Of a stretch of DNA of 64,000 nt, positions 7,851 through 55,435 are shown one piece after another. The notes under the pieces are model-generated. The model had not been told where the DNA came from and made no database searches. It saw only the letters and a list, made by a program, of their open reading frames with translations. Location: sequence record OP729297.1. One strand, given 5' to 3'. A program made the position numbers and the translations under genes. How positions within the stretch are numbered: position 1 is the stretch's first letter; every line of letters starts with the position of its first letter.

Positions 7851-7859
7851 TATTTACAG
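7851..7859 (-). promoter_or_regulatory. class B motif CTGTAAATA
   Basis: Intergenic, 32 nt before ATG. Confidence 0.65.
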
Positions 7860-7864
7860 AAATG

Positions 7865-7893
7865 AAAAAGGGCCACCAGCAATGGCAGCCCTT
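7865..7893 (-). terminator. intrinsic terminator
   Basis: AAGGGCTGCC..GGTGGCCCTT followed by T-run. Confidence 0.7.
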
Positions 7894-7897
7894 GTAT

Positions 7898-8122
7898 TTA
7901 GCTTTCGAGTGTTTCCTCGTTCTTGAGGCCGTGTGTGCGACAGAAGGCCTGCCACCGTTTTTCAACTTCACGGTCCTCAACGAATTTGATTCGGCAAGAG
8001 TACGCAGTCTTAATAGCGACCATCGCTTGCTTCTTCTTAGGGAATTGCTCACGCCAGGCCATAGCTACAGGCGTCAGTACCAGATGCAGATACTCATTCA
8101 ATTCAGTAGGTGTCATTAGCAA
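7898..8122 (-). CDS. hypothetical protein
   Basis: 74 aa ending just before a terminator. Confidence 0.65.
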   Translation of the reverse strand: MLMTPTELNEYLHLVLTPVAMAWREQFPKKKQAMVAIKTAYSCRIKFVEDREVEKRWQAFCRTHGLKNEETLES

Positions 8123-8388
8123 TAATCCTCTGAGCCATCTTGACCGTCACGACGATTGATACGTGGGTCGCGATCATCTTCGGCGCGTTGTTTGTCGGCA
8201 GCATCTTGCTGTGCCTGATCGTCTTCGTTCTGCGCATCGAGAATCATGCCCACCAGCACTTCACGATCAGGCACATCGTCGTCATCGTCCAGATCGTCCA
8301 GCAGACCTTTGGCACTCGCCAGATGATAAAGCACATCAAGCGGCATGTCTTCGAGTTCTTCGCGTTCGTATACCATAACATTCTCCAA
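8116..8388 (-). CDS. acidic hypothetical protein
   Basis: 90 aa, SD GGAG, Asp-rich. Confidence 0.75.
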   Translation of the reverse strand: MENVMVYEREELEDMPLDVLYHLASAKGLLDDLDDDDDVPDREVLVGMILDAQNEDDQAQQDAADKQRAEDDRDPRINRRDGQDGSEDYC

Positions 8389-8392
8389 ATAG

Positions 8393-8415
8393 AAAAGCCC
8401 CGCTCAATGCGAGGC
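8393..8415 (-). terminator. intrinsic terminator
   Basis: GCCTCGC-ATTGA-GCGGGGC followed by TTTT. Confidence 0.7.
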
Positions 8416-8424
8416 AATGTGTGT

Positions 8425-9039
8425 TTACATTAATACGGTCATGCGAGCCAGAACAGGATAGTCGTCGTTGTGGCGCTTAATGCCGTTGTCTTTGTTGAGT
8501 TCGAATGCTGTGCGGTAGCGCTGAGTGAAAACGCCAACGCCATGATCGTGCTGCTTCACGTTATGATGAATATCGACAACGTGAATGCCTTTATCGTGCA
8601 GCGTCAGGCACAGGTCGGTCAGCGTACACATGCCACCGAAGTATTGAGTGAAACGCTGGCGGCTTTCGAGGTCAAGCGACAGCAGATTAGGATTGTTGCC
8701 TGATGCGTCATTCGACACGTTGAAACGCGGCACGTCTTTCAGGTCTTCTGCGTACATGTCGTACACATCAATACTGCCTTTCAGATCTTTCGGCATGACA
8801 GTCACAGGCATAGCGTGTGCGTCGGTCAGCGGGTCGAACGTAATGCGAACGTTGTGTTCGTCGATAGGCGTGATAGAGATGTTCTTTAACGCGAACGCAT
8901 TACGGTGGCCAGTGTCTACGTGTACGATCATACACTCACATTCCACCAGCTCTTGTACGTGCTTGGCGTCGATTGCAAAGTTACCAGCAGCCAGAGAAGC
9001 GTAAGAGCGTTTGGCGAAGAAAGTTTTAATAAGGTTCAT
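8425..9039 (-). CDS. hypothetical protein
   Basis: ~204 aa from MNLIKT. Confidence 0.75.
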   Translation of the reverse strand: MNLIKTFFAKRSYASLAAGNFAIDAKHVQELVECECMIVHVDTGHRNAFALKNISITPIDEHNVRITFDPLTDAHAMPVTVMPKDLKGSIDVYDMYAEDLKDVPRFNVSNDASGNNPNLLSLDLESRQRFTQYFGGMCTLTDLCLTLHDKGIHVVDIHHNVKQHDHGVGVFTQRYRTAFELNKDNGIKRHNDDYPVLARMTVLM

Positions 9040-9101
9040 GGCATGTTCTCTCAATTAGATTGTGAAGTAAGTGGCGCCGTAACGCCACAGTCAGACAAGG
9101 A

Positions 9102-9605: not shown

Positions 9606-9625
9606 CGTTTAATCTCAGGCAGAAT

Positions 9626-9653
9626 AAAAAGAAGCGAGGCCGAAGCCCCGCTC
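9626..9653 (-). terminator. intrinsic terminator
   Basis: GAGCGGGGC-TTCG-GCCTCGCTTC followed by T-run. Confidence 0.8.
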
Positions 9654-9661
9654 AAACAACT

Positions 9662-13765: not shown

Positions 13766-14788
13766 TTATTCTGCGATAGTGCCACGAACAACACATGGTG
13801 GTACCCAGCGTGACTTTAATTCACGCTCACCCTTTAAAGGTCCGTACCAATAACTATGATGATGGCCTCTGCGTATATGCGCACGACGACCATTCGATTC
13901 ATGAGATTTCACTTCGCTTTCATAGGTACGAATTTCATTAAGCAACTCTGTACCCACATTCCACTCACGAACATCACGAACAGGAATGATTTTGTAACTG
14001 TTACCGCTACGTCTAGGTTTGAGTGATTTGATTCCTCCTTTATAGATATTGTCTACCTGTGATGCAACGAACAGCAGCACGTTAACGACAGGCTTCATGA
14101 GAGCCATGACAGCTCCAGTGATCTCAGGGCCGTTGTCAGAATTACTGTCAACACCAGTCGCGCCGTTAGCGCCTACAAGGTGCATGAACCAATCGAAACC
14201 ATCAGACAGTTCCATGTCTTTGGTAATGTCGAATATGATATAGAGCGACATTACTTGATTGCCTGTGCCATCATTATACACACCGAAGCAGGACAAGCTC
14301 AGGTGAGTTGCCTCTTGGTAGTTAACGTATGTTGCCCAGAACCCTTCAATATCAATTTCGTATTTGTTACCGGTCGCGGCATGTTTGTAGTCGAGTGTGA
14401 ACACACAATTGATCCACTGCGACCAGTGAGGTAATTGACGCAGCGTAGAGGTCGGCAGCACTTTAGGTGCATCACCCTCAATCAGATGCGGCCACAGTTC
14501 TTTCTCAATCACAAACGATGCTTTCGTAAAAGACCAAACGTAATGCGTATAGGTCGCTGACGAAATAAACATTAGCTGACGTGCTATGTCAGGATTGATC
14601 TCCGTTGGAATCATATTAGCCCAACGAACAAACTCTTCCATAGGGATTCCTAGGGAAGGGAGTTTACCGTTCTTGTTTTTCAGGTACTTAGTGAAGTGAT
14701 CGGTTATCTTTGATCGTGCTGCACCACGAGAGGCAGACTCCTGCAGGTATGCCTCATGTACTTGGACGAATGTTGCTTTTTCAGACAT
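13766..14788 (-). CDS. hypothetical phage protein with C-terminal RxHxRRGH motif
   Basis: Start moved to MSEKAT after SD GGGAG; C-terminal RRAHIRRGHHHSYWYG..WVPP. Confidence 0.8.
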   Translation of the reverse strand: MSEKATFVQVHEAYLQESASRGAARSKITDHFTKYLKNKNGKLPSLGIPMEEFVRWANMIPTEINPDIARQLMFISSATYTHYVWSFTKASFVIEKELWPHLIEGDAPKVLPTSTLRQLPHWSQWINCVFTLDYKHAATGNKYEIDIEGFWATYVNYQEATHLSLSCFGVYNDGTGNQVMSLYIIFDITKDMELSDGFDWFMHLVGANGATGVDSNSDNGPEITGAVMALMKPVVNVLLFVASQVDNIYKGGIKSLKPRRSGNSYKIIPVRDVREWNVGTELLNEIRTYESEVKSHESNGRRAHIRRGHHHSYWYGPLKGERELKSRWVPPCVVRGTIAE

Positions 14789-14884: not shown

Positions 14885-15586
14885 TCAATATTTACAGATT
14901 ACGTTCATGAAGTAGTAGCGCATTAAGTCTGGATGCAGGATGCAGTTCTTTTTATATCTACGCAACATCTGAATGACTTTATGCAGGTCTTCATGGTGCA
15001 TGAACATGAAGTCACGACCAAACGTATAGGTTGTCGCATGGATCTCCTGAACGCGCTTTTCGAAATCTGGGTCAATTGCCATAGACACAAAGTTGTCTAC
15101 TGTGATGTTGGACTTTAGATCGAAGTCACCACAGGCCAGCTCAGGATTGCAGACGTCCAAGAAGTTTTTAAACTGAGTGTCTCGAACAATCGCCAGAAGT
15201 TTCTCGATTGCCGGTTCGCCGTAGATAGTGATTTGAGTGTCGTTAGTATGTACGGTACGACCAAGCGCATCAAAGATGCCAGCCAGAGAACTGGCGAGTC
15301 TCTCCAAACTTATGTGGAATAGACTTTCAGACAGCACGATAGGAAGTTGTGGGGGCGCTGTATGACCACGGAAACTAACAACAGAATCGTATGCAGTACC
15401 GACAATGCTTGAAGGAATATCCCGGCGGAGAATAGAGTACAGTGCATCGTTAGCACTACGTTCAGTGACGTCAATATAGAACAGCGTCTTGGTTGCAGCA
15501 TCAGGCTGTTTGGCCTGACGTGCGTAGCCATGAATTAATCCATGCAGAGCTTCGGTAGGTAAAATGTTAGTCTGAATCTTTTTCAT
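14885..15586 (-). CDS. hypothetical protein (possible degenerate LAGLIDADG fold)
   Basis: 233 aa, SD AGGAG; contains LAGIFDALG. Confidence 0.75.
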   Translation of the reverse strand: MKKIQTNILPTEALHGLIHGYARQAKQPDAATKTLFYIDVTERSANDALYSILRRDIPSSIVGTAYDSVVSFRGHTAPPQLPIVLSESLFHISLERLASSLAGIFDALGRTVHTNDTQITIYGEPAIEKLLAIVRDTQFKNFLDVCNPELACGDFDLKSNITVDNFVSMAIDPDFEKRVQEIHATTYTFGRDFMFMHHEDLHKVIQMLRRYKKNCILHPDLMRYYFMNVICKY

Positions 15587-15647: not shown

Positions 15648-15686
15648 AAGCGAGAGAATGTGGGAGGCATCCCTCCCACTATTGGT

Positions 15687-16115
15687 TTACAGTTTTACGC
15701 GGGCCGCGCTGTATGAGAGAATTGTGACACCCTCTTCAACATCGCTAACGTTTGCCACTGCAAGGCATGGCGCAACAGACTTGTCATTGACGACAACCTG
15801 TAGGCCGAGAATGCTGCCGACGTTACCAGCAGTGATATCTTCGACGCGAGCGATAGGGTCGAAGAAGTTTTCCAGGCCGTTGGTAGAGAAGCCCGCCACC
15901 AGATCAAGAGTTACCAATACGATTCGGCGGGTATCAGGCGCAGACTCTTCTGGCAGTGCTGACTGCAACAGAGAATAGACTGTATCGACATTGAACTCAG
16001 GTTCGCCTTCAACGTTAGGCACGATAGTTGGTGTACGAACCTCACTACCGTCTTCTTCGTTGGTTGTCACTGTTTCCAGATTAAGGATATCAGCAGTATA
16101 GATTTGAGTACGCAT
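15687..16115 (-). CDS. hypothetical protein
   Basis: 142 aa, SD GAGGAG, acidic. Confidence 0.8.
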   Translation of the reverse strand: MRTQIYTADILNLETVTTNEEDGSEVRTPTIVPNVEGEPEFNVDTVYSLLQSALPEESAPDTRRIVLVTLDLVAGFSTNGLENFFDPIARVEDITAGNVGSILGLQVVVNDKSVAPCLAVANVSDVEEGVTILSYSAARVKL

Positions 16116-16164: not shown

Positions 16165-18684
16165 TTACTCGTCGTCATCGTCATCAGAAGTCTTCGCAGA
16201 CTTACTGATAGCGTTCTTCAACATCTCGTTGCCTTTGGTAGACTGCACGAACTTGAAGCACCACAGACGCAGGCCAGCAGGTTTGACTTTCAGTTTCTTA
16301 CACACGCCAACAACTTGCTCTTTGCTGCCGTTGATAAGAGTACGGAAGTCATCCCAGTCCATCTTAACGTCAGATGCGAGCGGGCATGGCGCCTTGATCT
16401 TGAAGCTCTTACGAGTGCCGTTGATCAGGCCGAGAGTTTTCAGGTAATGCCACGTATCGAACACTGGGTCGAAGCCACGCGCTTCACCGTTGCCGTCAGC
16501 TTCCCACAGACGTAACCAAGTCTGCTGGTTAGGGATGCCGCCCATCTTGTTCTTGATGGTCTTGGCTGCAATGAAACGGTAGCGGTCGGTACCACCTTCA
16601 ACAGTTACAGACTTCTCACCAACGATACCCGGTGCGTCTTTCATTGTCGGCCAGCCCTGAGGCACAGCACGAGAAGCCAGACGAACACGCACGTCAGAGT
16701 TGTGGCTAACGAAACCGTTAGTGATCACAACAGACGTTTCTTCGACGTTCACATCCCAGAACTCCACAGGATTGACCAGAGCTTTCAGCGTGAACGGAAC
16801 AGGAACGATAGAGTTATCGAAGTTATACCAGTCGTCGATGTACGCCAGTTGCTGCATCAGCAGGTCGTACTGGTCATCGTAACCTTCAATCTGCTTATGC
16901 AGAATCAGGTCGAGAGCCTGTGCGAAGTCCTGCTCTGGCGCCAGATAGATTTTATCCTGGCCAGTCTGCAACTGATAGTCCAGCACATAGCGAGTCAGTT
17001 CAGGGAACACGTCAGCGATCACAGTCAGCATCTGAGTCTGACGTTGACGGCTGGTGGCCTCGAAGCTGATACCAGCAAACGCACCGAGTTCTCCCTGCGC
17101 TACCGCCGCTTCCAGCTCGTGGTAGTTCAGGCCAGGGATATGCAGGCCGCTTTCGTCGGCGTAAGCATAGATACCGATAGACAGCAGGTGACGTGCCCAC
17201 AGAGAGAACGTGTGAACATCGTCCTGATCGCCAATCATATCAGTGGTCAGTACGTTCGCAGCAAACGTAGTGTCGCCAGCAACGGCCAGAGGCAATTGTA
17301 CGCTCTTGAAGTCAGCGTTACCTAGCATCTGATAAATCAGACTGCTTGACAGGTCGAACTCGTCAGGCACGTTCGCTTTCAGTTCTTTCACAGGCGGTAC
17401 ACGCAGACCTGCGTACTGGCCTTTCTGCTCTGGATATTGAGCAAGCTGGTTGAGCGTGTTCCACTCAGGACGCAGCACAGCCATACCATCAGCAGTCGTG
17501 TCATACATGAAGGTGAACTGACGATGTTCAGCGCTGCCTACATACGCATGACCACCAGCGTTCAGTTCGACCGGGAACGGAGCGTCATCAACTTTCCACG
17601 CGCCATTGATCTTCTGGAAGCCGTCGAACGATTCGACCATAACTTCCGTACCAGCATCGATCAGCTCTTTGATCTGAGGTGCAGTCAGCACGCCGTGATC
17701 AGTACGAATCAGAGTATCGCGGTCGAAGCAATAGAACTTCAACGCGTCACCGCCAGGCTCATACTCAGGTGAGCCGAACATAACAGCAGGCTTCTGACGT
17801 AACTGGTTAACGCCAACGATGGTCATCATCTTACGACGCATACCACCACGGAAACGTTTGATGCCGTCGGAGAACATACGCGCTTGCAGCGCCATTGCTT
17901 TCGAGCCTTCGTCATCATCGACCTGATCCGGCATCATTGCTGGATAGGAGTCAACGATAACCATCGCCTGCATGTGTCCGTCTGGTGCAGGTACTTTGAA
18001 CTGGTTGTTACGGCTGAACCATTTCTTGTCATACTTACCAGCCAGCTTCTTCGCGTTCTCTTTGTTGTTCTCAAAGATGTAGTACGCGGTACCGTCTTTC
18101 TCAACGATCTTATCTGGCAGACGACGACGCAGCATCGACATATAATCGAAGAAGCGCTCACCGTTGTCTGGTGCATAGTAACGGATCTTAGGCTTAACGA
18201 TCCAGCTACCGTCTTCATCATCACGCACACCGAAGATAGTTTTCGGGTCAACGCGAACGCCGAACGTTTTCAACTGACCAGCAACGTACTCTGCGTCGGT
18301 TGAACCTTCGTAGTCAAACACTACGCTAATGCCAGAGTAATGCAGACGAATCAGGCTCGCCATAATACTCATGGTCATTGTTGACTTACAAGACTGCTCA
18401 CCGCCGCTAAACGTGTACCAGCCACCAGGGACAATACCACCGGACAGGAACATGTCGAGTGCGAGACAGCCTGTTGAGATACGAGGTGCGTGACGCGCTG
18501 CATCCTGCGAACTTACTTTCGTTTTCTTTTCGATGCCATCAAGAACATCGTCCATCAAACTAGCCAGGTCAAAGCCCATGACTTCTACGCCGCCAACATC
18601 ATCGGCCGCGAATGCTTTACCTTTCTTGGCTTTGGTTTTACCTTCGGCTTCTTTTTCAGCCTTGATTCGTTTCGCTTTAGCCAT
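16165..18684 (-). CDS. recA: RecA/UvsX-like recombinase containing an intein
   Basis: TGCLALD..GGI..G, Walker A GGEQSCKST, DYEG, VDS..AM, NQLRQK, PGGDALKFY. Confidence 0.93.
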   Translation of the reverse strand: MAKAKRIKAEKEAEGKTKAKKGKAFAADDVGGVEVMGFDLASLMDDVLDGIEKKTKVSSQDAARHAPRISTGCLALDMFLSGGIVPGGWYTFSGGEQSCKSTMTMSIMASLIRLHYSGISVVFDYEGSTDAEYVAGQLKTFGVRVDPKTIFGVRDDEDGSWIVKPKIRYYAPDNGERFFDYMSMLRRRLPDKIVEKDGTAYYIFENNKENAKKLAGKYDKKWFSRNNQFKVPAPDGHMQAMVIVDSYPAMMPDQVDDDEGSKAMALQARMFSDGIKRFRGGMRRKMMTIVGVNQLRQKPAVMFGSPEYEPGGDALKFYCFDRDTLIRTDHGVLTAPQIKELIDAGTEVMVESFDGFQKINGAWKVDDAPFPVELNAGGHAYVGSAEHRQFTFMYDTTADGMAVLRPEWNTLNQLAQYPEQKGQYAGLRVPPVKELKANVPDEFDLSSSLIYQMLGNADFKSVQLPLAVAGDTTFAANVLTTDMIGDQDDVHTFSLWARHLLSIGIYAYADESGLHIPGLNYHELEAAVAQGELGAFAGISFEATSRQRQTQMLTVIADVFPELTRYVLDYQLQTGQDKIYLAPEQDFAQALDLILHKQIEGYDDQYDLLMQQLAYIDDWYNFDNSIVPVPFTLKALVNPVEFWDVNVEETSVVITNGFVSHNSDVRVRLASRAVPQGWPTMKDAPGIVGEKSVTVEGGTDRYRFIAAKTIKNKMGGIPNQQTWLRLWEADGNGEARGFDPVFDTWHYLKTLGLINGTRKSFKIKAPCPLASDVKMDWDDFRTLINGSKEQVVGVCKKLKVKPAGLRLWCFKFVQSTKGNEMLKNAISKSAKTSDDDDDE
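16699..17730 (-). mobile_element. intein (344 aa) in RecA
   Basis: Begins CFDRDT (block A), block B AEHRQF, block F FWDVNVE, ends VSHN followed by Ser. Confidence 0.92.
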
Positions 18685-18706
18685 TTGTGCTATAGTCCAG
18701 ATTGAG

Positions 18707-18733
18707 AAAAGAAGGGGCAGCCTAAGCTACCCC
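18707..18733 (-). terminator. intrinsic terminator
   Basis: GGGGTAGC-TTAG-GCTGCCCC followed by TTCTTTT. Confidence 0.75.
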
Positions 18734-18741
18734 GTTACCGA

Positions 18742-19983
18742 TTACTTTTTCTTTTTCTTTTTCTTCTTCGGCGCGTCGTCATCATCGTCATCAGAAGATT
18801 TCTTTTTCTTCTTCTTATCGGATGATTTCACCTTGTCAGAAGATTTCTTTTTCTTCTTCTTAGGTGCATCGTCTTCGTCGTCGTCATCATCGTCCGACTT
18901 CTTAGACTTCTTAGACTTCACCTTCGAGGACTTTTTCTTTTTCGAAGGACGATCGTCATCATCGTCTTCGTCATCGTCATCTTCGTCATCGTCTAACAGC
19001 TTACGAGACTTAGACGCTTTTGACTTCTTGGACTTGGATGGACGGTCATCGTCGTCATCTTCATCCTCGTCGTCATCGTCATCGTTGCGACGTTTTTTCT
19101 TGTCTGCCTTGCCGCCTTTCTTCTTGCGGCCCAGCGCCATGTCATCGTCGTCATCGTCTTCGTCATCATCACCATCATCGTTGGTGTTGACACCGATAAC
19201 GTCCATCTTTTTGAAGTCTGCCATAGCGGCGGCTTCATCCAGACGACCCAGCATGTCGTAGATTTCGTTCCAGTTGTCGAAGTCCCAGGTCAGGTAACCC
19301 TTTTCTTCTTCGGTCAGCGGAGTGTGATCGCCACGTTCGATGGTGTAACGCTCGGCCGGAGATTTTTTGGCGTTGTATTTGATTTCAATATCGCAGCCAT
19401 ACTTCGGATGGTTAACCTGGAACGCCTGCTTAGACTTCTTACCAGACTTCTTATCTTTGACCGTGTGAATGTTACGTTCACCCAGCTCGCGGATTTTGCC
19501 TGCCAGAGAGTTAGACAGCGGAATACACATAACAGGAGTCCAAGACTCACTGCCCATTTCTTTCTTGCCTGTCTTCTGCTCTTGCTTAGTGAGCTTAGGC
19601 ATTTTACGCGGTGCAGCAGCCTGCTCGTCACGAATGATTGCCTGTGCGTACCACTTATAGTCGTACTGCGCTGGCGCACCAGATTCGTCGTTACCGTGAG
19701 CGATACCACAGTACGGACACTTCATACCGTTCAGAGGTTTGTTCTGATTGTCCGGGTCGAAGCTAACGCACATGCGCGGGATTTTGATCTCTTTGTCTTT
19801 ATCTTTGCCGCCCATGATCTTGATCCAGTGCTTCTTGATTGGAAGCAGGTCAAGGTCAAGCAGACGAATTGATACCCAGTTGCCGTTTGCTTTCTTCGAA
19901 AGAGGGAAGATTTCAAAGATCTCTGACTCACGCAAGCTATCGCGCTTGCTGTTGTCTTGAATGTCACCAAATCCACGTGCCAT
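18742..19983 (-). CDS. single-stranded DNA-binding protein (T4 gp32-like core) with Asp/Lys low-complexity tail
   Basis: WVSIRLL..KHW..C..CPYC..WYAQAIIR..HPKYGCDIEIK pattern; adjacent to recA. Confidence 0.75.
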   Translation of the reverse strand: MARGFGDIQDNSKRDSLRESEIFEIFPLSKKANGNWVSIRLLDLDLLPIKKHWIKIMGGKDKDKEIKIPRMCVSFDPDNQNKPLNGMKCPYCGIAHGNDESGAPAQYDYKWYAQAIIRDEQAAAPRKMPKLTKQEQKTGKKEMGSESWTPVMCIPLSNSLAGKIRELGERNIHTVKDKKSGKKSKQAFQVNHPKYGCDIEIKYNAKKSPAERYTIERGDHTPLTEEEKGYLTWDFDNWNEIYDMLGRLDEAAAMADFKKMDVIGVNTNDDGDDDEDDDDDDMALGRKKKGGKADKKKRRNDDDDDEDEDDDDDRPSKSKKSKASKSRKLLDDDEDDDDEDDDDDRPSKKKKSSKVKSKKSKKSDDDDDDEDDAPKKKKKKSSDKVKSSDKKKKKKSSDDDDDDAPKKKKKKKK

Positions 19984-20022
19984 TGTTGTTCCTCAATATT
20001 GAGTTTGCTCTTGTGTGAGCAT

Positions 20023-20031
20023 TGTTTACAG
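20023..20031 (-). promoter_or_regulatory. class B motif CTGTAAACA
   Basis: Upstream of SSB. Confidence 0.65.
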
Positions 20032-20033
20032 TT

Positions 20034-21071
20034 TTAGGCTAGCCCTTGAGCCTGCATATGTTTGCGCATCTGTTCAAGTTCGAACTTATCGAACTCCTCA
20101 CCAACGTCCATCGTTAGACGAGCAACGCCGAGTGGGTCTACGCGCTTAATAAGCAGCCTCAGTTTTTCGGTACGTCTTTCACTATCTACGTGATCTTCTA
20201 AGTGATGATGGTCACTCACTTTTTGATGTAGGGACGCGTCCGCACCTTCATCAGATTCATTCGCAGGAGTATCGAGACTTACCGAGAAATTCAGAGAAGT
20301 GGTATCTTCACCTGTCGCCAGTTTCTTACGTTGAGTCTGGGGAATAGTGTACGCGATGCCGTATTCATGCTCGCTACTACTACAGGTTTGTGCGTTCAAG
20401 ATCCACCACTTCGTATAACTCACAATCGCACCACGCGACGAGTCATACTTGTTGATAGCCACGATGACGTTACGCAGGAAGTTCTGGCGCACGTCTTTGC
20501 TGTCGTACAGCTTACCGCGGTTCGTATCAACGTAGAATTTTGTTTGCTTGCTGCATAGTCTATAGAAGTCAGCAACTACCGAGTGGAAGTATTCCATGAA
20601 CTGCGGTAGAAGGTCATTCAGACGGCACAACGCGATAAAGAGTTTGGAACGAGACTCTGCGCCAAACATCTTCACGTATGCGTTCAATCGTTTCGAATAC
20701 GCTTCGCGCTTGATAGGGTCTTGCGTCGAAATGAATCCGCGATAGAGATCAACATACGTCGCGTAGTATCGCTTAATTACATTTTCCAGGAAGACGTAGA
20801 TGAAGTTGCGCTCCATTTTCAGTTCCTGGATATAAATCATTTTCTGATCACGAGGCACAGAGAGCGCCTTAATCAGAAGGCTAATCGCACGGTCACGCGT
20901 TTCTGCGTTATACGGCTTTCGCTTCTTATTCGACGTAATCATGTTCAACAGATAGGTCAGTTGCACATCGAATACGTTCGTGTTCTCAACAATCTCACGG
21001 AGGCAGTCGTGAAGCATGGTGTCCATGACGCTTTCTATCTGACCGCCTGTGAGATTCGACTTATTGTTCAT
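20034..21071 (-). CDS. phage sigma-70-like factor (regions 2-3, no clear region 4)
   Basis: DVRQNFLRNVIVAINKYDSSRGAIVSYTKWWILNA (region 2.2-2.4); VSLDTP (region 3). Confidence 0.85.
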   Translation of the reverse strand: MNNKSNLTGGQIESVMDTMLHDCLREIVENTNVFDVQLTYLLNMITSNKKRKPYNAETRDRAISLLIKALSVPRDQKMIYIQELKMERNFIYVFLENVIKRYYATYVDLYRGFISTQDPIKREAYSKRLNAYVKMFGAESRSKLFIALCRLNDLLPQFMEYFHSVVADFYRLCSKQTKFYVDTNRGKLYDSKDVRQNFLRNVIVAINKYDSSRGAIVSYTKWWILNAQTCSSSEHEYGIAYTIPQTQRKKLATGEDTTSLNFSVSLDTPANESDEGADASLHQKVSDHHHLEDHVDSERRTEKLRLLIKRVDPLGVARLTMDVGEEFDKFELEQMRKHMQAQGLA

Positions 21072-21103
21072 GGTCAAATACACCTGTTAGTTGCTTTGAC
21101 TCT

Positions 21104-21112
21104 TATTTACAG
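21104..21112 (-). promoter_or_regulatory. class B motif CTGTAAATA
   Basis: Upstream of the sigma gene. Confidence 0.65.
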
Positions 21113-21116
21113 ATTT

Positions 21117-21428
21117 TTAGATCTTCGTGAGGTCGTCATGTTGATCTTGAATCTCGGAGCCAGTCAGTTCTGCCTCAGGCTTACGCTGACCTAAATCTGC
21201 TGGTGGTTTAGTGCGTTGTTCTTCACGCTGCTCCTGTTCGCGTTCAGTGCGCTCTTTTTCCTTTTTCTCAATCTCTTCCTTGGGTGTGTCGATACCATAT
21301 TCTTCTTTGATGCGCTGCTGGTCCTGTTGCTCCAGTGCGCGTTGCTGGCCATCGAGAGGCGGTTGTTTCTCCGACGTGTCCTGACGATCAACACGAATCT
21401 CGTGTGAAAGGCTTACAAAGATTTCCAT
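21117..21428 (-). CDS. charged protein with MEIFVSLS N-terminal tag
   Basis: Start after SD GGAG; 103 aa, E/Q/K-rich. Confidence 0.8.
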   Translation of the reverse strand: MEIFVSLSHEIRVDRQDTSEKQPPLDGQQRALEQQDQQRIKEEYGIDTPKEEIEKKEKERTEREQEQREEQRTKPPADLGQRKPEAELTGSEIQDQHDDLTKI

Positions 21429-21448
21429 GGGATTTACTCCAGAATGAC

Positions 21449-21473
21449 AAAAGCGGCAGCACAAGGCCACCGC
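21449..21473 (-). terminator. intrinsic terminator
   Basis: GCGGTGGC..GCTGCCGC followed by TTTT. Confidence 0.65.
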
Positions 21474-21479
21474 TAGATT

Positions 21480-21947
21480 TTAGCTACGCTTCTCCAACAC
21501 CTTGCGATCTTCTTCAATGAAGCGCAGAGTAATTGGAGGGCGTCCTGGGTGCTGAATGATCTGATTGAGATATTCAGCCTGACTGTCTTTCGCGTGTTTC
21601 AGCAACGTGACGTGCGGGCGATACGGCGTGTGCGAAAACTTCGCTGCACCACATGCGTGAATGCGCTCATGCTCCGCACACAGGTCAGGTGATTCGAGAA
21701 CGAGAACCAGAATCTTATCTTGACCTTCGCCGAACAGTTCAGCAGAAGCGACGGTAGCGAAGAACTCACCAGCATCGTTTTGCTCAGCCTGAACGTCAGG
21801 ATTGGTTTCATCATAAGCCAGAGTAACGTGCAATTCTTCTGGCACATCATCGCTATCACGGTCGATGCCGATAGCAGCACCGAGTTTCAGCAGCATCTCC
21901 TCTGAATCATAGTCAGGGAAGACGCGCCACAGGCCACCTTTAACCAT
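21480..21947 (-). CDS. 2H phosphoesterase, Acb1/T4 gp57B-like
   Basis: Two HxT motifs (LHVTLAY, RPHVTL) and LVLVLES..L...H; start moved to MVKGG after SD GAGG. Confidence 0.85.
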   Translation of the reverse strand: MVKGGLWRVFPDYDSEEMLLKLGAAIGIDRDSDDVPEELHVTLAYDETNPDVQAEQNDAGEFFATVASAELFGEGQDKILVLVLESPDLCAEHERIHACGAAKFSHTPYRPHVTLLKHAKDSQAEYLNQIIQHPGRPPITLRFIEEDRKVLEKRS

Positions 21948-27474: not shown

Positions 27475-27483
27475 CTGTAAATA
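27475..27483 (+). promoter_or_regulatory. class B motif CTGTAAATA
   Basis: Upstream of primase. Confidence 0.65.
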
Positions 27484-31978: not shown

Positions 31979-32024
31979 TTCTATATCCCACAAGCCGTGT
32001 TAACCAAGTAAGGATATTTACAGA

Positions 32025-34824: not shown

Positions 34825-35227
34825 TCTGATTTTTCGTTTCAAAATTGGGGAAAGTCCTTGATTTTTCTCGGATTTTCCTCATTTTTAGTCTGAAAAGGGG
34901 CATTTGGTCAAAAAATGTACTACTTTTTTGGAAAAATTTACACGGTTTAGACGACCTAGGGTTTTCCGCTAGATCGCTGCCCAGGGTGCGTAGAGGGTGC
35001 AATCTCGGCTGTTCGGAGCATGGTTTCTTTATTTTCTATGTCTCCGAAACGTGCCGCCTAAAGATGTACCTGTAGTTGTAATGTTCAAGCGTACCACGAG
35101 CGTTGTAGCTAGCCCGCTGTAGCCCATGCCTTCCATGCCTAGCTGTTGTAGCTTCCAGCTGTAGCATTCGGAGTTAAGAGTTGTCTGATTCTGTAAAGAA
35201 ACGATAGAAAAATCAGGTAATCATGAT
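34825..35227. other. candidate replication origin / regulatory intergenic region
   Basis: ~400 nt non-coding; clustered T-tracts; TGTAGC x4 (35104, 35118, 35147, 35160); CCATGCCT x2. Confidence 0.4.
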
Positions 35228-37372: not shown

Positions 37373-37411
37373 TACTGTAAACTAACAGCAATCAACATAG
37401 AGGATTAATAT

Positions 37412-41046: not shown

Positions 41047-41055
41047 CTGTAAACA
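41047..41055 (+). promoter_or_regulatory. class B motif CTGTAAACA
   Basis: Upstream of the 65-aa gene. Confidence 0.6.
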
Positions 41056-41389: not shown

Positions 41390-41398
41390 CTGTAAATA
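41390..41398 (+). promoter_or_regulatory. class B motif CTGTAAATA
   Basis: Upstream of the clamp loader. Confidence 0.65.
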
Positions 41399-44262: not shown

Positions 44263-44271
44263 CTGTAAATA
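44263..44271 (+). promoter_or_regulatory. class B motif CTGTAAATA
   Basis: After a terminator-like hairpin (44216-44245), heads the sbcC operon. Confidence 0.65.
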
Positions 44272-44520: not shown

Positions 44521-44720
44521 TGACTGCTATCCAGCGCAAACCGATCGCTATGCCACTGTGGCGTGTTTTAAAACCAATCGCAAGCGATACCCGCGACGAA
44601 TCATATGCGTATGATGTGATCGCAGAATCTGCCGAGCCGTACACCGCTGATGAAATCGAAGTATTCGAACAGATTCACGGTACAGGTCTTATCCAGGAAG
44701 AAACAATCGAGTACGTCTAA
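44520..44720 (+). CDS. small hypothetical protein
   Basis: 66 aa, TAATG-coupled on both sides. Confidence 0.7.
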   Translation: MTAIQRKPIAMPLWRVLKPIASDTRDESYAYDVIAESAEPYTADEIEVFEQIHGTGLIQEETIEYV

Positions 44721-47056
44721 TGGGCAAAGCGAAGCAGAAGCAAAAACAGAACCACGGCATCGGCCTGAAAGAAATTCATCTGCGCGATGTTGGCGTGTAC
44801 AAAGAGCTTGATATCGACACACTGGACAGTGAAGGCTTCGCAACCATTTGTGGTAAGAACCTCGACAGTCCGAACGTTAAAGACAACACGAACGGTGTAG
44901 GCAAAAGCCTGTTGTTCGGTGCAATCCCTACGCTGCTGTATGAAGCTGATCCTCTTGCGATGAAGAAGAAAGACAAGGGGAACATGCTCGGCAAAGACAG
45001 TTCGATTGAGCTGGCGTGGGAATCACCTCTCGGTGGTGAAGTCCGTATCGTTCAAACCAAATCGAAGTATCAGGTGTTCTACAATGGTGAGAACCAGAAA
45101 GTAGATCGTCAGGATGTTGCTCGCTCTTGGGTGACGAAGCACTGGCCATTAACGCGTGACGAGTTCTATAGCTACGCATATATCCAGTCACAGATTCAGC
45201 ATCCATTCCAACGCGCTACTCCTGCTGAACGCCTGTCTTACCTGACCTCGTTGTTTAACCTGGATGTGTTCGATAACATTCGCATGGCGTTGAAGAAGAA
45301 ACTGGACTTGGCGAAAGACGCTGAGACAGAATCTAAAGGTCTGGCTGATATGCTGGACGTTACTCAACGTAAGCAGAACGCGTTGTCGATTCACGCCGAA
45401 GAAAAGAATACGCTCGCCTCAATCATCAAGCACTCTGATAAAATGAAGGCCAGACGTAACGATCTGTCGGAGCAGTTGATTGAACTTGGTACTCAGCGCT
45501 CGAACGCGCGGAAATACGAAAAGCTCAAGCATCAACTCGACACGTTAGGCATCGAATGCTCTGACCTGAAAGGCGAATTGAATGCGCTGCGTGGTGAACT
45601 GATCGAGCACGACCGCTACGACGATTACGTTGAAGCACTGGAGGAGTACCAACAGGAACTCGCTGACGTTAAAAAGAAAATGAAGGCGCTCGGTGATGTT
45701 GCTGACCTCGACAACAAAAAGCTGCGCAAAGAACATGGACGCTTAGTCAAAGAGGAAGAGAGCCTCGAAGCGTTGCTGGAGAAAGTCGATGAACAACAAG
45801 AAGAATACGACGAGTGGCGAGAAGCCGTGGACAAGCTCAGTAAAAAGCTGTCTAAGCTCAAGGCTCCTAAGCGAACTCAGGAAGAGGCACAAGATTCCCG
45901 AGCAGAAGCCAAAGCGATAGTTCAGGCGTATCGTGCTTTCGAAGAACACGACCACGACGGTAACTCTTGTCCTACCTGCGGTCAGGATGTTGACCTGAAA
46001 GCTATGGCGCGCGCTGCAACAAAAGCTCAGGCAATCATTGACGAGTGCATCGAGGCTTTGGATTATCACAAGCTCAACGATCAACTCACCGAATTGAAAG
46101 CTGAGAAGGTGAAGAAGCCTAAGCACAAGCGCAAGGACCTTGAGAAGAAACTCAAGGCAATCAGCACAGCACTGGACGCTATCGAAGAACAATTCGAAGC
46201 GGCTAAGAAGTACGAGAAGCTGGTGGCCAAGCGTGATGCGCTCAAGAAACCTAAAGCAGTGAAGCAGCCTAAGAAAGCTCGTAAGACGATCAAGAACCGA
46301 ATCAAGGACCTTGAGATTCTGAAAGACCTTCGTGCTGCACTCAAAGCTGTTGGTGAACCAGAAGACCCGTTCTATATACTTGATGGTCGATATAAAAAGA
46401 TTAGCGCCGAAGTTGAAAAGCTGATCACCGATATCGAGAAGAAGGAGCGTAAAGCGCAGAACATCCAGATGCGTATTCAGGAGCATGAGCACTACGAAGA
46501 AACGTTGCGTGAACTCCGTAGTAAACTCGCAGACCTGCAACCGCTGATTGATAAGCGCAAAGTATTCGAAGTCCTGTACAAGGCTTACAGCAACAATGCT
46601 CTCAAGCTGAAAGCGGTTGAAGGCCGTATCAAACAGATTGAGAAGAAGCTGAACGAATACAGCGGTCTGGTGTTCCCTGAGCCGATGCACTTCGATTTGT
46701 TCACTACCAAGCAGGGTGTTGGTGCAACCGTTACGCGTGTGTCTTCTAAAAAGACAACCGATATTGCAATCATGAGTGGTGCAGAGACAAACTGCTTCCG
46801 CCTGTTGTTTGCTGTAGCGATCATGCCATTCATCCCTGCTAACCGTCGCACGAACTTTATCATTCTCGACGAGCCTGATAATAGTTGCAGCCCTGCGGTC
46901 AGTGAGCACATCATCAACAACTTCCTGCCGATACTCAAACAGATTATCCCGAACATTTACTGGATAACTCCGAATGATGTTGAGCACTTCTCTCATAATC
47001 AGTGGACGGTAACCAAGAAGCAAGGTACGTCTGCACTTACACGTAAGGTAATGTGA
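44720..47056 (+). CDS. sbcC: SbcC/Rad50 (T4 gp46-like) SMC ATPase
   Basis: Walker A G..NGVGKS, Q-loop YIQSQ, Zn hook CPTCGQ, signature MSGAE, Walker B IILDEPD. Confidence 0.92.
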   Translation: MGKAKQKQKQNHGIGLKEIHLRDVGVYKELDIDTLDSEGFATICGKNLDSPNVKDNTNGVGKSLLFGAIPTLLYEADPLAMKKKDKGNMLGKDSSIELAWESPLGGEVRIVQTKSKYQVFYNGENQKVDRQDVARSWVTKHWPLTRDEFYSYAYIQSQIQHPFQRATPAERLSYLTSLFNLDVFDNIRMALKKKLDLAKDAETESKGLADMLDVTQRKQNALSIHAEEKNTLASIIKHSDKMKARRNDLSEQLIELGTQRSNARKYEKLKHQLDTLGIECSDLKGELNALRGELIEHDRYDDYVEALEEYQQELADVKKKMKALGDVADLDNKKLRKEHGRLVKEEESLEALLEKVDEQQEEYDEWREAVDKLSKKLSKLKAPKRTQEEAQDSRAEAKAIVQAYRAFEEHDHDGNSCPTCGQDVDLKAMARAATKAQAIIDECIEALDYHKLNDQLTELKAEKVKKPKHKRKDLEKKLKAISTALDAIEEQFEAAKKYEKLVAKRDALKKPKAVKQPKKARKTIKNRIKDLEILKDLRAALKAVGEPEDPFYILDGRYKKISAEVEKLITDIEKKERKAQNIQMRIQEHEHYEETLRELRSKLADLQPLIDKRKVFEVLYKAYSNNALKLKAVEGRIKQIEKKLNEYSGLVFPEPMHFDLFTTKQGVGATVTRVSSKKTTDIAIMSGAETNCFRLLFAVAIMPFIPANRRTNFIILDEPDNSCSPAVSEHIINNFLPILKQIIPNIYWITPNDVEHFSHNQWTVTKKQGTSALTRKVM

Positions 47057-52663: not shown

Positions 52664-52665
52664 TC

Positions 52666-52883: not shown

Positions 52884-53744
52884 ATGCAATATTTATCCAG
52901 TTTCGCTTCAATCACCAATACATCTCAACCAACCACTGTGTTTTTATCTGATGATGACAACCTGCCTCAGATCAATGAAGACACAATGGAAGAGATATTC
53001 CGTAAAGCACGAACAACACTAGGAGGTGGCTTTCAATTAAATCCAGTTCGTGGTCAAACCGCCGAGAAGTATTACTTCACTCAGATGCGCAATGCCTACA
53101 CATCGCGTAGTGCTGTGCCCGCGGCAGACAATACAGTCATTGGTGCTGCGCTTAGGACAGACGAGAACTATGCCTCTCTCGCTTCTGATGGTCAGTCAAC
53201 CGAATGGTCTGTGTTTGAGTATGCTGTGTCAGATGCAATCTATGTCTATCCATTGAAACGAAACTTCGTTATCAACCCAGGCCTAGGACACACGCAAATG
53301 ATCATGCCCACATTCTCCGTCAATCGAAGTATGTCCTCTCAGTGGGCGGGTTACTACCTGGATGCGTACTTGTGTGAGTCTGGTGCTGCACCAACAAAAA
53401 CAAATGCCTACCTGGATGTTACGTACAGCGGCAACTACAACGTAACTCCGACATATCCTGTGACAGACTCAATATCAATGCTTGACTGCATGTATGGCAC
53501 TCGATACCAGAGCACTTCATCTGGCACAAGTCTGGGCTGGGGCAATAACCGAGTCACAGATTCTTTCCACTCTACTGAGACACTGTTTGAGCCTGAGACA
53601 GTGAATATTCACTTCGGACTCTTTCCACTTTCCTCTACCTTATTCTGGAAATTTGAAAGAGACATAGACTTCACGGTAGAAGATAACCTTGTGCCTGGCT
53701 CTCGTCCCTTTATTCAATTCACTGTAACCCACACAGAGCTATAA
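52884..53744 (+). CDS. putative virion protein, paralog family member B
   Basis: MQYLSSF..LNPVRG..KYYFT..LVPGSRPF. Confidence 0.8.
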   Translation: MQYLSSFASITNTSQPTTVFLSDDDNLPQINEDTMEEIFRKARTTLGGGFQLNPVRGQTAEKYYFTQMRNAYTSRSAVPAADNTVIGAALRTDENYASLASDGQSTEWSVFEYAVSDAIYVYPLKRNFVINPGLGHTQMIMPTFSVNRSMSSQWAGYYLDAYLCESGAAPTKTNAYLDVTYSGNYNVTPTYPVTDSISMLDCMYGTRYQSTSSGTSLGWGNNRVTDSFHSTETLFEPETVNIHFGLFPLSSTLFWKFERDIDFTVEDNLVPGSRPFIQFTVTHTEL

Positions 53745-53753
53745 GGAGCATTT

Positions 53754-54119
53754 ATGTGGAAATATGAACAGACAACTGGCCGTCTGTATAACGCTGCTGG
53801 TAAACTTGTCGCTACTGGCTATGCTGGTAAAGGCGAGCACAAAAACAAACATGAGTCTCAGAACGTAGTGGGTATGGGTCCTCTGCCTGTTGGTCACTAC
53901 ACGCTGAATGCGCCGCGCACCAGTGCGAAGACAGGACCTTACGCAATGGACCTGACTCCTGCAAAAGAGAACGTGATGTTCGGCCGCTCTGCTTTCCAGA
54001 TGCACGGCGATAGCATCAAAGCACCAGGTACTGCATCCAGTGGTTGTATCATCATGCCACGCAACATTCGTGAACTCGTATGGAACTCAGGCGACCACCA
54101 GCTTGAAGTAACAGTCTAA
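53754..54119 (+). CDS. Tlde1/DUF2778-like L,D-transpeptidase-fold protein
   Basis: GPLPVGHY, GRSAFQMHGDS, ASSGCII (His/Cys catalytic motif). Confidence 0.8.
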   Translation: MWKYEQTTGRLYNAAGKLVATGYAGKGEHKNKHESQNVVGMGPLPVGHYTLNAPRTSAKTGPYAMDLTPAKENVMFGRSAFQMHGDSIKAPGTASSGCIIMPRNIRELVWNSGDHQLEVTV

Positions 54120-54143
54120 CTGTTGTGGCACAAGGACGTGCTT

Positions 54144-54152
54144 CTGTAAATA
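54144..54152 (+). promoter_or_regulatory. class B motif CTGTAAATA
   Basis: Only 6 nt before the ATG of the SLOG gene. Confidence 0.55.
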
Positions 54153-54158
54153 TTTAAC

Positions 54159-54665
54159 ATGGAAAAGATATCCTTTACTGGCCATCGCCCGCAATCGCTG
54201 GGTGGATTCAGCCCTAAGGCAAAATACCGCCTGTATAAATTCGCGCACCGTAAAATGCTCACAATCGACGATGATGCAATTATCTATGTTGGTTGTGCTC
54301 TAGGTTTTGACATGGCCATTGCTACCGCTGCAATCGAGCAGGGCCATAAAGTTGTCTCCTGTCTGCCTTATCCTGGATTCAATTCACGCTGGCCTGTTAG
54401 CAGTGTGTTTGAGCTTGACGGCCTTCTTAATAAAAGTCACGAAGTAAGAATAGTCACATCAAAAGAAGATTGGCTGCACATGGATGGTCAGGCGGGTTTT
54501 GCGTTGAACAAACGCAATCACTACATGGTCGATGAAACTGATCGACTCATATCATTATGCTGCGGTGCTCCATCAGGTACGCAGAACTGTATCGACTATG
54601 CGCTCAGGCAGAACAAGCCCGTGACATACTGGTGGAAGGACTGGCTGCGATTCAATAGGAAGTAG
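54159..54665 (+). CDS. SLOG-family protein (YspA/DUF1273-like)
   Basis: FTGHRP, GCALGFD, RNHYMVD, SGTQNCIDYA. Confidence 0.85.
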   Translation: MEKISFTGHRPQSLGGFSPKAKYRLYKFAHRKMLTIDDDAIIYVGCALGFDMAIATAAIEQGHKVVSCLPYPGFNSRWPVSSVFELDGLLNKSHEVRIVTSKEDWLHMDGQAGFALNKRNHYMVDETDRLISLCCGAPSGTQNCIDYALRQNKPVTYWWKDWLRFNRK

Positions 54666-54668
54666 CCT

Positions 54669-55424
54669 ATGCAATACCATGTTTCCAACTACGGTGTATT
54701 CAGTCCATTGTGTGCTCAGGTCTACGCATTCGATCAGAGCACATCGTTGCAGACGAGCGCCGCAGTAGACGCCGTGTATAAATCTTTGTTCACGCTCGGC
54801 CTTGAGGGTCAAGCCAATACAGTCTCTGGTGTGCTATCTGGTAAGCGCTATGCCTCAAATCTCAAGTGGGCATACAGCGCCGTGCCGACAACTGACGATC
54901 AGTTCCACATAGGAACGACCGTGAGCGAAGGCTGCTCTAGAGGAAACTCTAATAGCGATTTAAACTGGTCGGCTAACAACACTCTATTCATCTGTGATAG
55001 TTCTGGCAACAGGGCTTGGTCCTACGGTAGATGCTCGGTGTCTACAGGTTCGCAGTCTCCTTCTCTGTCTGCAACCATTGTGCTGCGAAATGAAAACAAC
55101 ACAGGGTACAGTCTGACTTATGTGGGTAAGGTCAGCTTTAACACCTACCTAAGTGTGGCCTCTGCACAATTCAAATATGCGCGTGGTTCTAGCCTGAGTA
55201 TTAACGCCAGCTCGTACTCGTACACCATAAACAACGGCTCGTCTGACATGCGCATGATAGCTGATACGACTGAGGCTGATGGTGTGAGAACGCTGGACAA
55301 GTACGAGTGCATACAGAACGGCAAGCTGTTCAGCTTTAAGCCTGAAGAACTGAACTTCGGTCAACTTGTCCCAGGCACACGGCCTAAGGTTCAAGCCTTC
55401 TTGACCGCCAAGTTTGACCTTTGA
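54669..55424 (+). CDS. putative virion protein, paralog family member C
   Basis: MQY..S start and LVPGTRPK near the C-terminus. Confidence 0.75.
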   Translation: MQYHVSNYGVFSPLCAQVYAFDQSTSLQTSAAVDAVYKSLFTLGLEGQANTVSGVLSGKRYASNLKWAYSAVPTTDDQFHIGTTVSEGCSRGNSNSDLNWSANNTLFICDSSGNRAWSYGRCSVSTGSQSPSLSATIVLRNENNTGYSLTYVGKVSFNTYLSVASAQFKYARGSSLSINASSYSYTINNGSSDMRMIADTTEADGVRTLDKYECIQNGKLFSFKPEELNFGQLVPGTRPKVQAFLTAKFDL

Positions 55425-55426
55425 TT

Positions 55427-55435
55427 CTGTAAATA
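55427..55435 (+). promoter_or_regulatory. class B motif CTGTAAATA
   Basis: Upstream of sbcD. Confidence 0.65.

Follow-up and report, generated by a model that had tools for sequence, protein, structure and literature searches.

The late promoters of T4 are TATAAATA boxes, which gp55 reads together with gp33 and the gp45 clamp. In the cascade of Bacillus phage SPO1, host sigma A is followed by gp28 and then by gp33/34. Phage phiEco32 encodes gp36, a sigma without region 4, which reads a single 9-bp element, tAATGTAtA, at middle/late promoters with starts 6-8 bp downstream, and which is itself a middle-gene product (PMC8948821).

The DNA analysed here (the window, 64,000 nucleotides) corresponds to positions 186001-250000 in the 262,854 bp genome of vB_Ea_2910A, an Erwinia phage of the genus Alexandravirus. 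As judged from the letters of the genome, its repeated CTGTAAATA very probably serves as a one-piece promoter for the DNA-replication genes of this jumbo phage. The box is kin to known promoter types, with phiEco32 gp36 and the T4 late promoters as the comparison. As in phiEco32, there is a single box and no -35; the candidate sigma has region 2, and region 4 is not detectable. However, the sequence of the box is different, and the phages are unrelated (a 77-kb podovirus and a 263-kb myovirus). In phiEco32, both the transcription starts and their dependence on the sigma are experimental, whereas in vB_Ea_2910A they are predicted. The Erwinia phage also differs in having two classes of single-box promoter and perhaps two sigma-like proteins.

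The T4 late promoters also have a single AT-rich box near -10 and no -35. The earlier note had stated that a single base separates the box from that of T4, which is correct by inspection (TGTAAATA versus TATAAATA). A T4 late promoter was rejected as the identity of the box: the G at the second position of TGTAAATA is invariant (34/34 boxes), TATAAATA is present just twice in the 262,854 bp genome, and the box heads replication and recombination genes, not late virion or lysis genes. The T4 reader is the small gp55, whereas the candidate in vB_Ea_2910A is a 345-aa RpoD-like protein. The likeness to the T4 late box is a resemblance only.

Occurrence and anatomy of the box

Three promoter classes were found in the genome:

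Class A: early promoters of sigma-70-like form
Class B: the CTGTAAAYA box, ahead of replication genes
Class C: (W)CGC-TAATTT, ahead of structural genes

The class B boxes, their variants and the associated features are distributed along the window as follows:

7851..7859, minus strand: class B box CTGTAAATA, after a strong hairpin terminator, 32 nt before an annotated gene without assigned function (7450-7818, minus)
14889..14897, minus strand: class B box CTGTAAATA, overlapping the 3' end of gene 14885-15586 (minus), before 13766-14788 (minus; phrog_6160, annotated without function)
15684..15692, minus strand: variant box CTGTAAACC, with AAAA context upstream
20023..20031, minus strand: class B box CTGTAAACA, 39 nt upstream of the SSB gene 18742-19983 (minus; phrog_15004)
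20034..21071, minus strand: RpoD-like phage sigma gene (345 aa; phrog_17569), whose product is one of two candidate readers
21104..21112, minus strand: class B box CTGTAAATA, 32 nt upstream of the sigma gene
21452..21474, minus strand: strong intrinsic terminator, upstream of a small gene (21117-21428, minus) and the sigma gene
27475..27483, plus strand: class B box CTGTAAATA, 39 nt upstream of the primase gene 27523-28581 (plus), in a divergent intergenic region
32015..32023, minus strand: class B box CTGTAAATA, 36 nt before 31286-31978 (minus; phrog_19006, annotated without function)
35191..35199, plus strand: variant box CTGTAAAGA, 28 nt before 35228-36844 (plus; phrog_30690)
37375..37383, plus strand: variant box CTGTAAACT, 28 nt before a small ORF (37412-37606, plus)
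41047..41055, plus strand: class B box CTGTAAACA, 40 nt before a small ORF (41096-41293, plus)
41390..41398, plus strand: class B box CTGTAAATA, after a terminator, 37 nt before the clamp-loader gene 41436-42722 (plus)
44263..44271, plus strand: class B box CTGTAAATA, after a terminator, heading two small ORFs and an SbcC-like gene (44720-47056, plus)
54144..54152, plus strand: class B box CTGTAAATA, 6 nt upstream of the start codon (ATG) of an SLOG/YpsA-like gene (54159-54665, plus)
55427..55435, plus strand: class B box CTGTAAATA, before an SbcD-like gene (55467-56540, plus)

The window contains 11 exact copies of CTGTAAAYA, against 0.98 expected and a maximum of 4 in dinucleotide shuffles. 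The whole genome contains 34 copies, against about 4 expected by chance. The earlier note had given the same 11 copies, and every coordinate and strand was confirmed; its three variants (15684(-), 35191 and 37375) are real. Every copy is oriented with the downstream gene, as had been claimed. All 34 genome-wide copies lie on the sense strand relative to local genes, and the antisense strand carries none. A fixed-boundary script scored 33/34 boxes as sense (binomial p = 2e-9); the single box scored otherwise is that of the primase, within the divergent intergenic region.

Most copies are found 6-100 nt upstream of a start codon. Boxes within 110 nt upstream of a start account for 23 of the 34, compared with 16% of the genome that lies so close, and 6/34 are deep inside genes. 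About six boxes genome-wide directly follow strong hairpin terminators, at points where transcription requires a further promoter; that the box often follows a terminator is true in the window for the copies at 7851, 41390 and 44263. A C immediately precedes 27 of the 29 genomic TGTAAATA octamers, and the hexamer TAAATA is under-represented in the genome outside the box.

Alignment of the 34 sites defined the full element as a single box, (A)AAT-CTG-TAAAYA. The only extra information upstream lies at -4 to -1 relative to the box (A/A/A/T), and the AAT/AAA flank accompanies the 34 sense-strand copies. No conserved -35 was detected, in agreement with the earlier reading (no position between -50 and -5, counted from the box, exceeds 0.14 bit). 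An A is enriched at the seventh nucleotide after the box (21/34 sites), which places TAAAYA at -12 to -7, and the element would span about -18 to -7 relative to the predicted start. In appearance it is an extended -10 element (T-12, A-11) without a -35 partner. At the 54144 box, the seventh nucleotide downstream is the A of the ATG at 54159, which has no ribosome-binding site. The predicted +1 thus coincides with the A of the start codon, and this mRNA may be leaderless.

Genome-wide, class B boxes head the genes for the beta clamp, a DNA polymerase subunit, the NAD ligase, SSB, primase and the clamp loader, and also those for a DNA methyltransferase, sigma, SbcC, SbcD and an HNH endonuclease. 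Replication genes within the structural block possess boxes of their own; the structural genes carry TAATTT in place of the class B box. The two classes share the same geometry, and TAATTT-N6-G of class C has the canonical -11A/-7T pattern. The gene identities proposed earlier for SSB, sigma, primase, dnaX (clamp loader), the sbcC operon and sbcD were confirmed, but the 'Pol-like gene' at 35228-36844 was not: it belongs to phrog_30690, a PHROG family without function annotation.

Conservation in related jumbo phages

Jumbo phages of Dickeya, Pseudomonas and Vibrio carry the box as well, ahead of the orthologous replication genes. The genomes compared were JA29, Lu11, GR7B, Peetri and, in part, PaBG. 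The box is kept before the SSB, primase, polymerase subunit, SbcD, clamp loader and ligase orthologues, and the flanks differ. It precedes SSB in 5/5 genomes in which an orthologue was found, in the same place in Lu11, JA29, GR7B and Peetri; the boxes before the other orthologues were found in 3-4 genomes each. The word CTGTAAAT was counted against a reversed-word control in Lu11 (48 vs 6), JA29 (39 vs 7), GR7B (14 vs 3) and Peetri (10 vs 1). PaBG has the sigma, yet CTGTAAAT is almost absent. Contigs with related sequence are present in metatranscriptomes; they are fragmentary and derived from relatives.

vB_Ea_2910A shares the features of the Lu11/PaBG/Alexandravirus group, namely the CTGTAAAT core, the A-rich 5' flank and the gene-wise orientation, and it encodes the RpoD-like sigma of this group (phrog_17569). 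Pseudomonas phage Lu11 is reportedly the subject of a paper by Adriaenssens et al. 2012. In this distant relative, the identical box already carries a putative-promoter annotation: the GenBank record NC_017972 labels it 'putative middle/late promoter', and the annotated features read AAAACTGTAAAT(A/G). The core, the A-rich 5' flank and the orientation rule are the same as here, a box precedes the SSB orthologue, and a sigma gene of the same family is close by. However, the Lu11 sigma is only 36% identical to that of vB_Ea_2910A, G is tolerated at the last box position, and many copies lie within genes. The Lu11 annotation is a prediction only, and does not separate replication from structural genes.

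The earlier reading of a single-box promoter with no -35, used for replication genes, is thus well supported at the level of sequence and comparison. It follows from the strict strand bias, from the position of the boxes between terminators and start codons, from their retention before orthologous replication genes in phages whose sigmas are only 24-70% identical, and from a geometry that resembles a -10 element.

Candidate readers of the box

CTGTAAAYA is likely to be the core of a phage-specific 'middle' promoter that is read by a phage sigma-family factor. Two phage sigma-like proteins are candidates, of which the RpoD-like sigma (window 20034-21071) is slightly favoured. Whereas the box statistics, the conservation and the sigma fold are direct results, we infer the start site, the timing of class B and the identity of its reader. 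Host core RNA polymerase with the phage-encoded factor would melt the DNA at the box and start about 7 nt past its last A. It would then transcribe the replication, recombination and DNA-modification genes, and also the operon that contains the RpoD-like sigma gene. As the favoured reader, this sigma would activate its own gene.

The 345-aa protein matches the PHROG sigma family (E 2.6e-157). The family profile matches RpoD regions 1.2-2.4, the Y..WW motif is retained, and the top structural matches are sigma-70 chains. In Pfam, 30/40 homologues match Sigma70_r2, and 0/40 match region 3 or 4; the C-terminus forms a conserved 55-residue three-helix domain. The protein is a true sigma-70-family member with the region 2 melting residues kept. 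Since region 2 is present and region 4 is not detectable, it fits as the box reader, and it is plausible that it reads class B. Upstream of its gene lie a strong terminator and a B box that belongs to it, and no sigma-70-like (class A) promoter was found upstream of it in vB_Ea_2910A. The sigma gene follows a B box in every lineage checked, with B-box-headed operons in Lu11, GR7B and Peetri. Self-reading would therefore require an unexplained first supply, and this arrangement suits a sigma cascade about as well as self-activation. Moreover, the RpoD-like region 2 might prefer the TAATTT class (A-11/T-7), which would count against it as the reader of class B.

In such a cascade, host sigma-70 reads class A, an early phage protein reads CTGTAAATA, and the RpoD-like sigma, made from class B, reads TAATTT. 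This order of events is possible, although we consider it doubtful. In this case, too, the box is a phage promoter with a single element, read by a protein other than the sigma proposed in the earlier note. The early protein would be encoded outside the window:

Genome 140596-141735: phrog_19229 protein, ECF-sigma-like by structure only

This protein is a homologue of PaBG gp112, which has been proposed as a possible sigma (Evseev et al. 2020, PMC7412058). The five best matches of its predicted structure are all ECF sigmas and span sigma-2 and sigma-4 (Z 6.4-7.7), but a Z of 6-8 is middling among helical proteins. No member of the family matches a Pfam sigma domain (0/18), and the profile comparison with the sigma family was not significant. 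ECF sigmas normally need a -35 box, whereas class B has none. At the head of its operon stands a class A promoter of sigma-70-like form (genome 144687), no convincing terminator separates the two, and the protein is probably made early, which makes the cascade a serious rival. However, the operon is also preceded by a B box, and a clear sigma-70-like promoter was not found ahead of the corresponding operon in Lu11 and PaBG. The position of the RpoD-like sigma gene behind a B box, the canonical -11A/-7T pattern of TAATTT-N6-G, and the retention of the phrog_19229 protein in JA29, Lu11, GR7B and Peetri alongside both motifs would all suit the cascade. Three temporal classes, with phage sigmas made from the preceding class, are also known from SPO1. 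The SPO1 promoters have two boxes (-35 and -10) versus two single-box phage-specific classes here, and the second sigma of vB_Ea_2910A is suggested by structure alone.

Recognition of the box by a host sigma-70 holoenzyme that small phage proteins have re-targeted, with neither phage sigma-like protein involved, is improbable. Such re-targeting has precedents in T4 (AsiA/MotA) and in the Thermus phage P23-45, whose factors favour extended -10 promoters. The TG just before a TA-starting hexamer is loosely extended -10-like, and re-targeting would explain who first transcribes the sigma gene. However, given the predicted start, the invariant A at -7 and the A/A at -10/-9 fit sigma-70 poorly, the alternative register of the box would read AAATAN, and a MotA-like box upstream was not found among the 34 sites. 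The box is conserved with the phage sigma over Erwinia, Dickeya, Pseudomonas and Vibrio hosts, and the clear class A promoters of this phage look quite unlike it. An ordinary host sigma-70 promoter (TTGACA-like -35 and TATAAT-like -10, 16-18 bp apart) was rejected, as there is no -35 and TAAAYA has A at -7.

A role of the word in RNA, as a processing site or a translational-regulator binding site on mRNA, is very unlikely: it would account for the sense orientation, the location of most copies in 5' leaders or upstream-gene 3' ends and the six intragenic ones, but there should be little RNA right after strong intrinsic terminators (about six copies) unless a promoter follows, one ATG only 6 nt past a box has no ribosome-binding site, the distance to the start codon ranges between 6 and 100 nt, and both the purine enrichment at a constant 7 nt from the box and the geometry common to the TAATTT class fit initiation.

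A promoter read by a phage sigma-family factor remains the preferred reading. More tentatively, there might be a three-step programme throughout a clade of Gram-negative jumbo phages (Alexandravirus, Salmondvirus, Lu11, PaBG, and the Vibrio and P. putida relatives), with host core polymerase, two phage sigma-like proteins and two single-box classes of the same geometry, in which the RpoD-like protein would be the late factor. If so, AAT-CTG-TAAAYA-N6-A would serve replication genes and WCGC-TAATTT-N6-G virion genes, the two classes being distinguished only by three upstream bases and positions -9 and -7, and a very divergent ECF-sigma-like protein would read a promoter that has no -35.

Copies, layout and genes of the class B box

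The class B box, CTGTAAAYA, is very likely a single-box promoter of replication genes that lacks a -35 element. This reading of the sequence, first offered in an earlier note, is supported by strand bias, placement after terminators, and conservation before orthologous genes. The phage vB_Ea_2910A (OP729297.1), an Alexandravirus, is a jumbo phage that infects Erwinia amylovora; its genome has 262,854 bp, of which bases 186001-250000 are identical to the window. Nearly all genes in this record are annotated as 'hypothetical protein'. Genes were called anew on the whole genome, in close agreement with the deposited calls.

The window contains 11 exact copies of CTGTAAAYA, against 0.98 expected from dinucleotide shuffles. 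Their coordinates and strands agree with those reported earlier: 7851(-), 14889(-), 20023(-), 21104(-), 27475, 32015(-), 41047, 41390, 44263, 54144 and 55427. Three variant boxes (CTGTAAACC, CTGTAAAGA and CTGTAAACT) are also present as claimed. There are 34 copies genome-wide, where Markov models of order 1-4 predict 1-4. All 34 run in the direction of the surrounding gene block; when scored by script with the block boundaries fixed, 33/34 did so, the exception being the primase box, which lies in a divergent intergenic region. Of the boxes, 23 are no more than 110 nt ahead of a called start, a zone that makes up only 16% of the genome. The class B word seems to be avoided where unwanted, because C precedes 27 of the 29 TGTAAATA octamers genome-wide and the hexamer TAAATA seldom occurs outside the box (70 copies genome-wide, 27 in the box). 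TAATTT, the core of the class C box, is likewise scarce outside promoter context, with 45 of its 47 genome-wide copies on the sense strand and 2 antisense. The scarcity of both hexamers suggests selection against stray promoter-like words.

Alignment of the 34 sites showed an additional A, A, (A/T), T immediately upstream of the class B box. From -50 to -5 relative to the box, the alignment carries no more than 0.14 bit at any position; therefore, class B has no conserved -35 element, as had been claimed. The seventh base after the box is A in 21/34 sites. If this A is +1, the element would be AAT-CTG-TAAAYA, with TAAAYA at -12 to -7. This would be the register of the sigma-70-family -10 hexamer, of which T-12 and A-11 are retained. 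About six boxes stand immediately after strong hairpin terminators, and the window ones (7851, 41390 and 44263) account for the earlier remark that boxes often follow a terminator. A promoter is needed directly after a terminator; a signal acting in the RNA would make little sense there.

Behind the box at 54144, the seventh base coincides with the A of the ATG that starts the SLOG/YpsA-like gene. Within this stretch (54144-54161), the box ends 6 nt before the ATG, and there is no Shine-Dalgarno/ribosome-binding site; in JA29, a normal leader precedes the orthologue. Judged from the sequence, this mRNA may be leaderless, with its predicted +1 at the A of the ATG.

In the window, the box heads the genes for SSB, the sigma factor, primase, the clamp loader, an SbcC-like operon, and the SbcD-like and SLOG/YpsA-like proteins, as well as several unknowns. 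The first six had been named correctly in the earlier note, whose 'Pol-like' gene at 35228 turned out to be of unknown function. Elsewhere in the genome, the box heads genes for the beta clamp, a DNA polymerase subunit, an NAD-dependent ligase, a DNA methyltransferase, a phosphatase, and an HNH endonuclease. Each replication gene inside the long structural block has a box of its own.

Two gene-poor regions carry a class B box. The first (genome 56063-57387), 1.3 kb without an annotated gene, begins with a class B box (genome 56066) and ends with a TAATTT box. Neither a tRNA nor an Rfam family was found in it, so that small ORFs or an RNA missed by the annotation may lie there. The second (genome 259867-260304) has a box right after a strong terminator, followed by about 440 nt free of ORFs until the opposite-strand block starts. 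In addition, the RecA/UvsX-like gene at 16165-18684(-) encodes 839 aa; in JA29, Lu11, and PaBG its length is about 500 aa. Two stretches of it are matched by Pfam RecA, and the gene may carry an intein or other insertion.

Conservation in relatives and previous annotation

Relatives of the RpoD-like sigma factor, the 345-aa protein encoded at 20034-21071(-), were found in 81 phage records. Five whole genomes were compared, those of Dickeya phage JA29, Pseudomonas phages Lu11 and PaBG, Vibrio phage GR7B, and P. putida phage Peetri, in which identity to the vB_Ea_2910A protein ranges from 70 to 24%. The word CTGTAAAT is strongly over-represented against a reversed-word control in Lu11 (48 vs 6), JA29 (39 vs 7), GR7B (14 vs 3), and Peetri (10 vs 1); by the same control, it is not over-represented in PaBG. 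The box is changed to GGTAAATA in Peetri and to CTGTAAAR in PaBG. Block-free gene calls for Lu11 and JA29 are poor, so that sense-strand fractions there are underestimated. The box precedes the orthologues of SSB, primase, polymerase subunit, SbcD, clamp loader, and ligase, with unrelated flanks.

In the GenBank record of Lu11, copies of the same box, the one before SSB among them, already carry the label 'putative middle/late promoter'. A search for experimental literature on these promoters found none, and nothing relevant was found for CTGTAAATA either. A recent review states only that such sigma homologues 'likely' direct the host polymerase to phage promoters (PMC13282480). Parts of the region occur in six public RNA-labelled runs. 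The RNA contigs over 17000-22900 are short and of low depth, and no start or end positions of molecules were reported for them; being mostly 90-95% alike, the contigs derive from relatives.

Promoter classes A and C

A k-mer screen of upstream regions gave two dominant words, CTGTAAA and CTAATTT. The usual form of the latter is (W)CGC-TAATTT (class C). After TAATTT, the seventh base is preferentially G, and the geometry is that of class B. The bases in which the two classes differ are T-14/G-13 of class B (G/C in class C), A-9 (T), and A-7 (T). The tail sheath gene and other large virion-type genes are headed by TAATTT, and the tail-sheath orthologue is preceded by it in four genomes, with JA29, Lu11, and PaBG among those named. 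(W)CGC-TAATTT is probably the late promoter class.

About twelve sigma-70-like early promoters (class A) were recognized when the remaining intergenic regions were read. They consist of an upstream TGGACAAAAT box, about 8 nt, a TTGtat -35, about 18 nt, and a tGTGATAyAAT extended -10. All are on the minus strand at 144-197 kb (genome 144687-196771). The distance of the unusual extra TGGACAAAAT box from the -10 is too great for a -35; the box may be a UP-like or factor-binding element. A strict sigma-70 consensus scan gave chance-level matches only, with no strand preference.

Class A promoters and TAATTT copies in the window
about 55, minus strand: class A promoter
5936, minus strand: class A promoter
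9957, minus strand: class A promoter
10771, minus strand: class A promoter
12559, minus strand: TAATTT
12925, minus strand: TAATTT
33016, plus strand: TAATTT
40652, plus strand: TAATTT
42786, plus strand: TAATTT
48760, plus strand: TAATTT
56584, plus strand: TAATTT
57394, plus strand: TAATTT
59378, plus strand: TAATTT
62989, plus strand: TAATTT

Candidate readers of the class B box

The RpoD-like sigma factor is a plausible, unproven reader of the class B box, to which we give slightly less than an even chance. It is a member of PHROG 17569 ('RNA polymerase sigma factor'). When 40 homologues were combined in a profile, it matched RpoD regions 1.2-2.4, with the Y..WW melting residues kept, and the best structural matches of its model (pLDDT 81.6) are sigma-70 chains. 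Pfam Sigma70_r2 is matched by 30/40 homologues, and Pfam region 3 or 4 by 0/40. A sigma factor with region 2 and no region 3 or 4 match fits a -10-only promoter. A precedent for this combination is the phiEco32 protein gp36, which has no region 4 and reads tAATGTAtA as its single element, transcription starting 6-8 bp downstream (PMC8948821). A class B box always lies upstream of the RpoD-like sigma gene, as a box for this gene itself in vB_Ea_2910A and JA29, and at the head of its operon in Lu11, GR7B, and Peetri. If this protein is the reader, it would activate its own gene.

The phrog_19229 protein is a second candidate, somewhat less likely than the RpoD-like sigma to be the class B reader. 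This 379-aa protein (genome 140596-141735(-), outside the window) is the homologue of PaBG gp112, which was proposed as a possible second sigma by Evseev et al. (PMC7412058). A 369-aa ORF at 33046-34155 was also tested as the gp112 homologue and rejected. Sequence methods detected no sigma domain in phrog_19229. The five best matches of its model are all ECF sigmas, covering both domains with middling Z scores of 6.4-7.7, and for residues 147-379 of the predicted structure the best alignments are to ECF sigma factors over their full length. The protein is conserved in JA29, Lu11, GR7B, and Peetri. Its structural model suggests that it may be a second phage sigma.

With phrog_19229 as the reader, a cascade might run from host sigma-70 to phrog_19229, then through class B to the RpoD-like sigma, and finally to class C. 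In vB_Ea_2910A, the RpoD-like sigma gene stands behind a strong terminator as well as its box, and no class A promoter was found upstream. The phrog_19229 operon, on the other hand, has a class A promoter adjoining a class B box at its head, and no convincing terminator intervenes. These gene placements fit self-activation by the RpoD-like sigma and the cascade about equally well. Both proteins and both motifs occur in almost all relatives, so that the phylogenetic profile cannot separate the two readers. When the profiles of the two protein families were compared with each other, the result was not significant.

Promoters of this kind are already known from the phiEco32 gp36 promoters, the T4 late promoters, and the Lu11 annotation; the advance is one of breadth and precision. 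The analysis provides a sequence-level map of the transcription programme for a poorly annotated group of jumbo phages that serve in the control of fire blight and soft rot, in which early, replication, and virion gene classes can be sorted from DNA alone. Two sharp single-box classes and two candidate sigma-like proteins also make a clean system for the study of how sigma domain 2 separates near-identical -10 elements.
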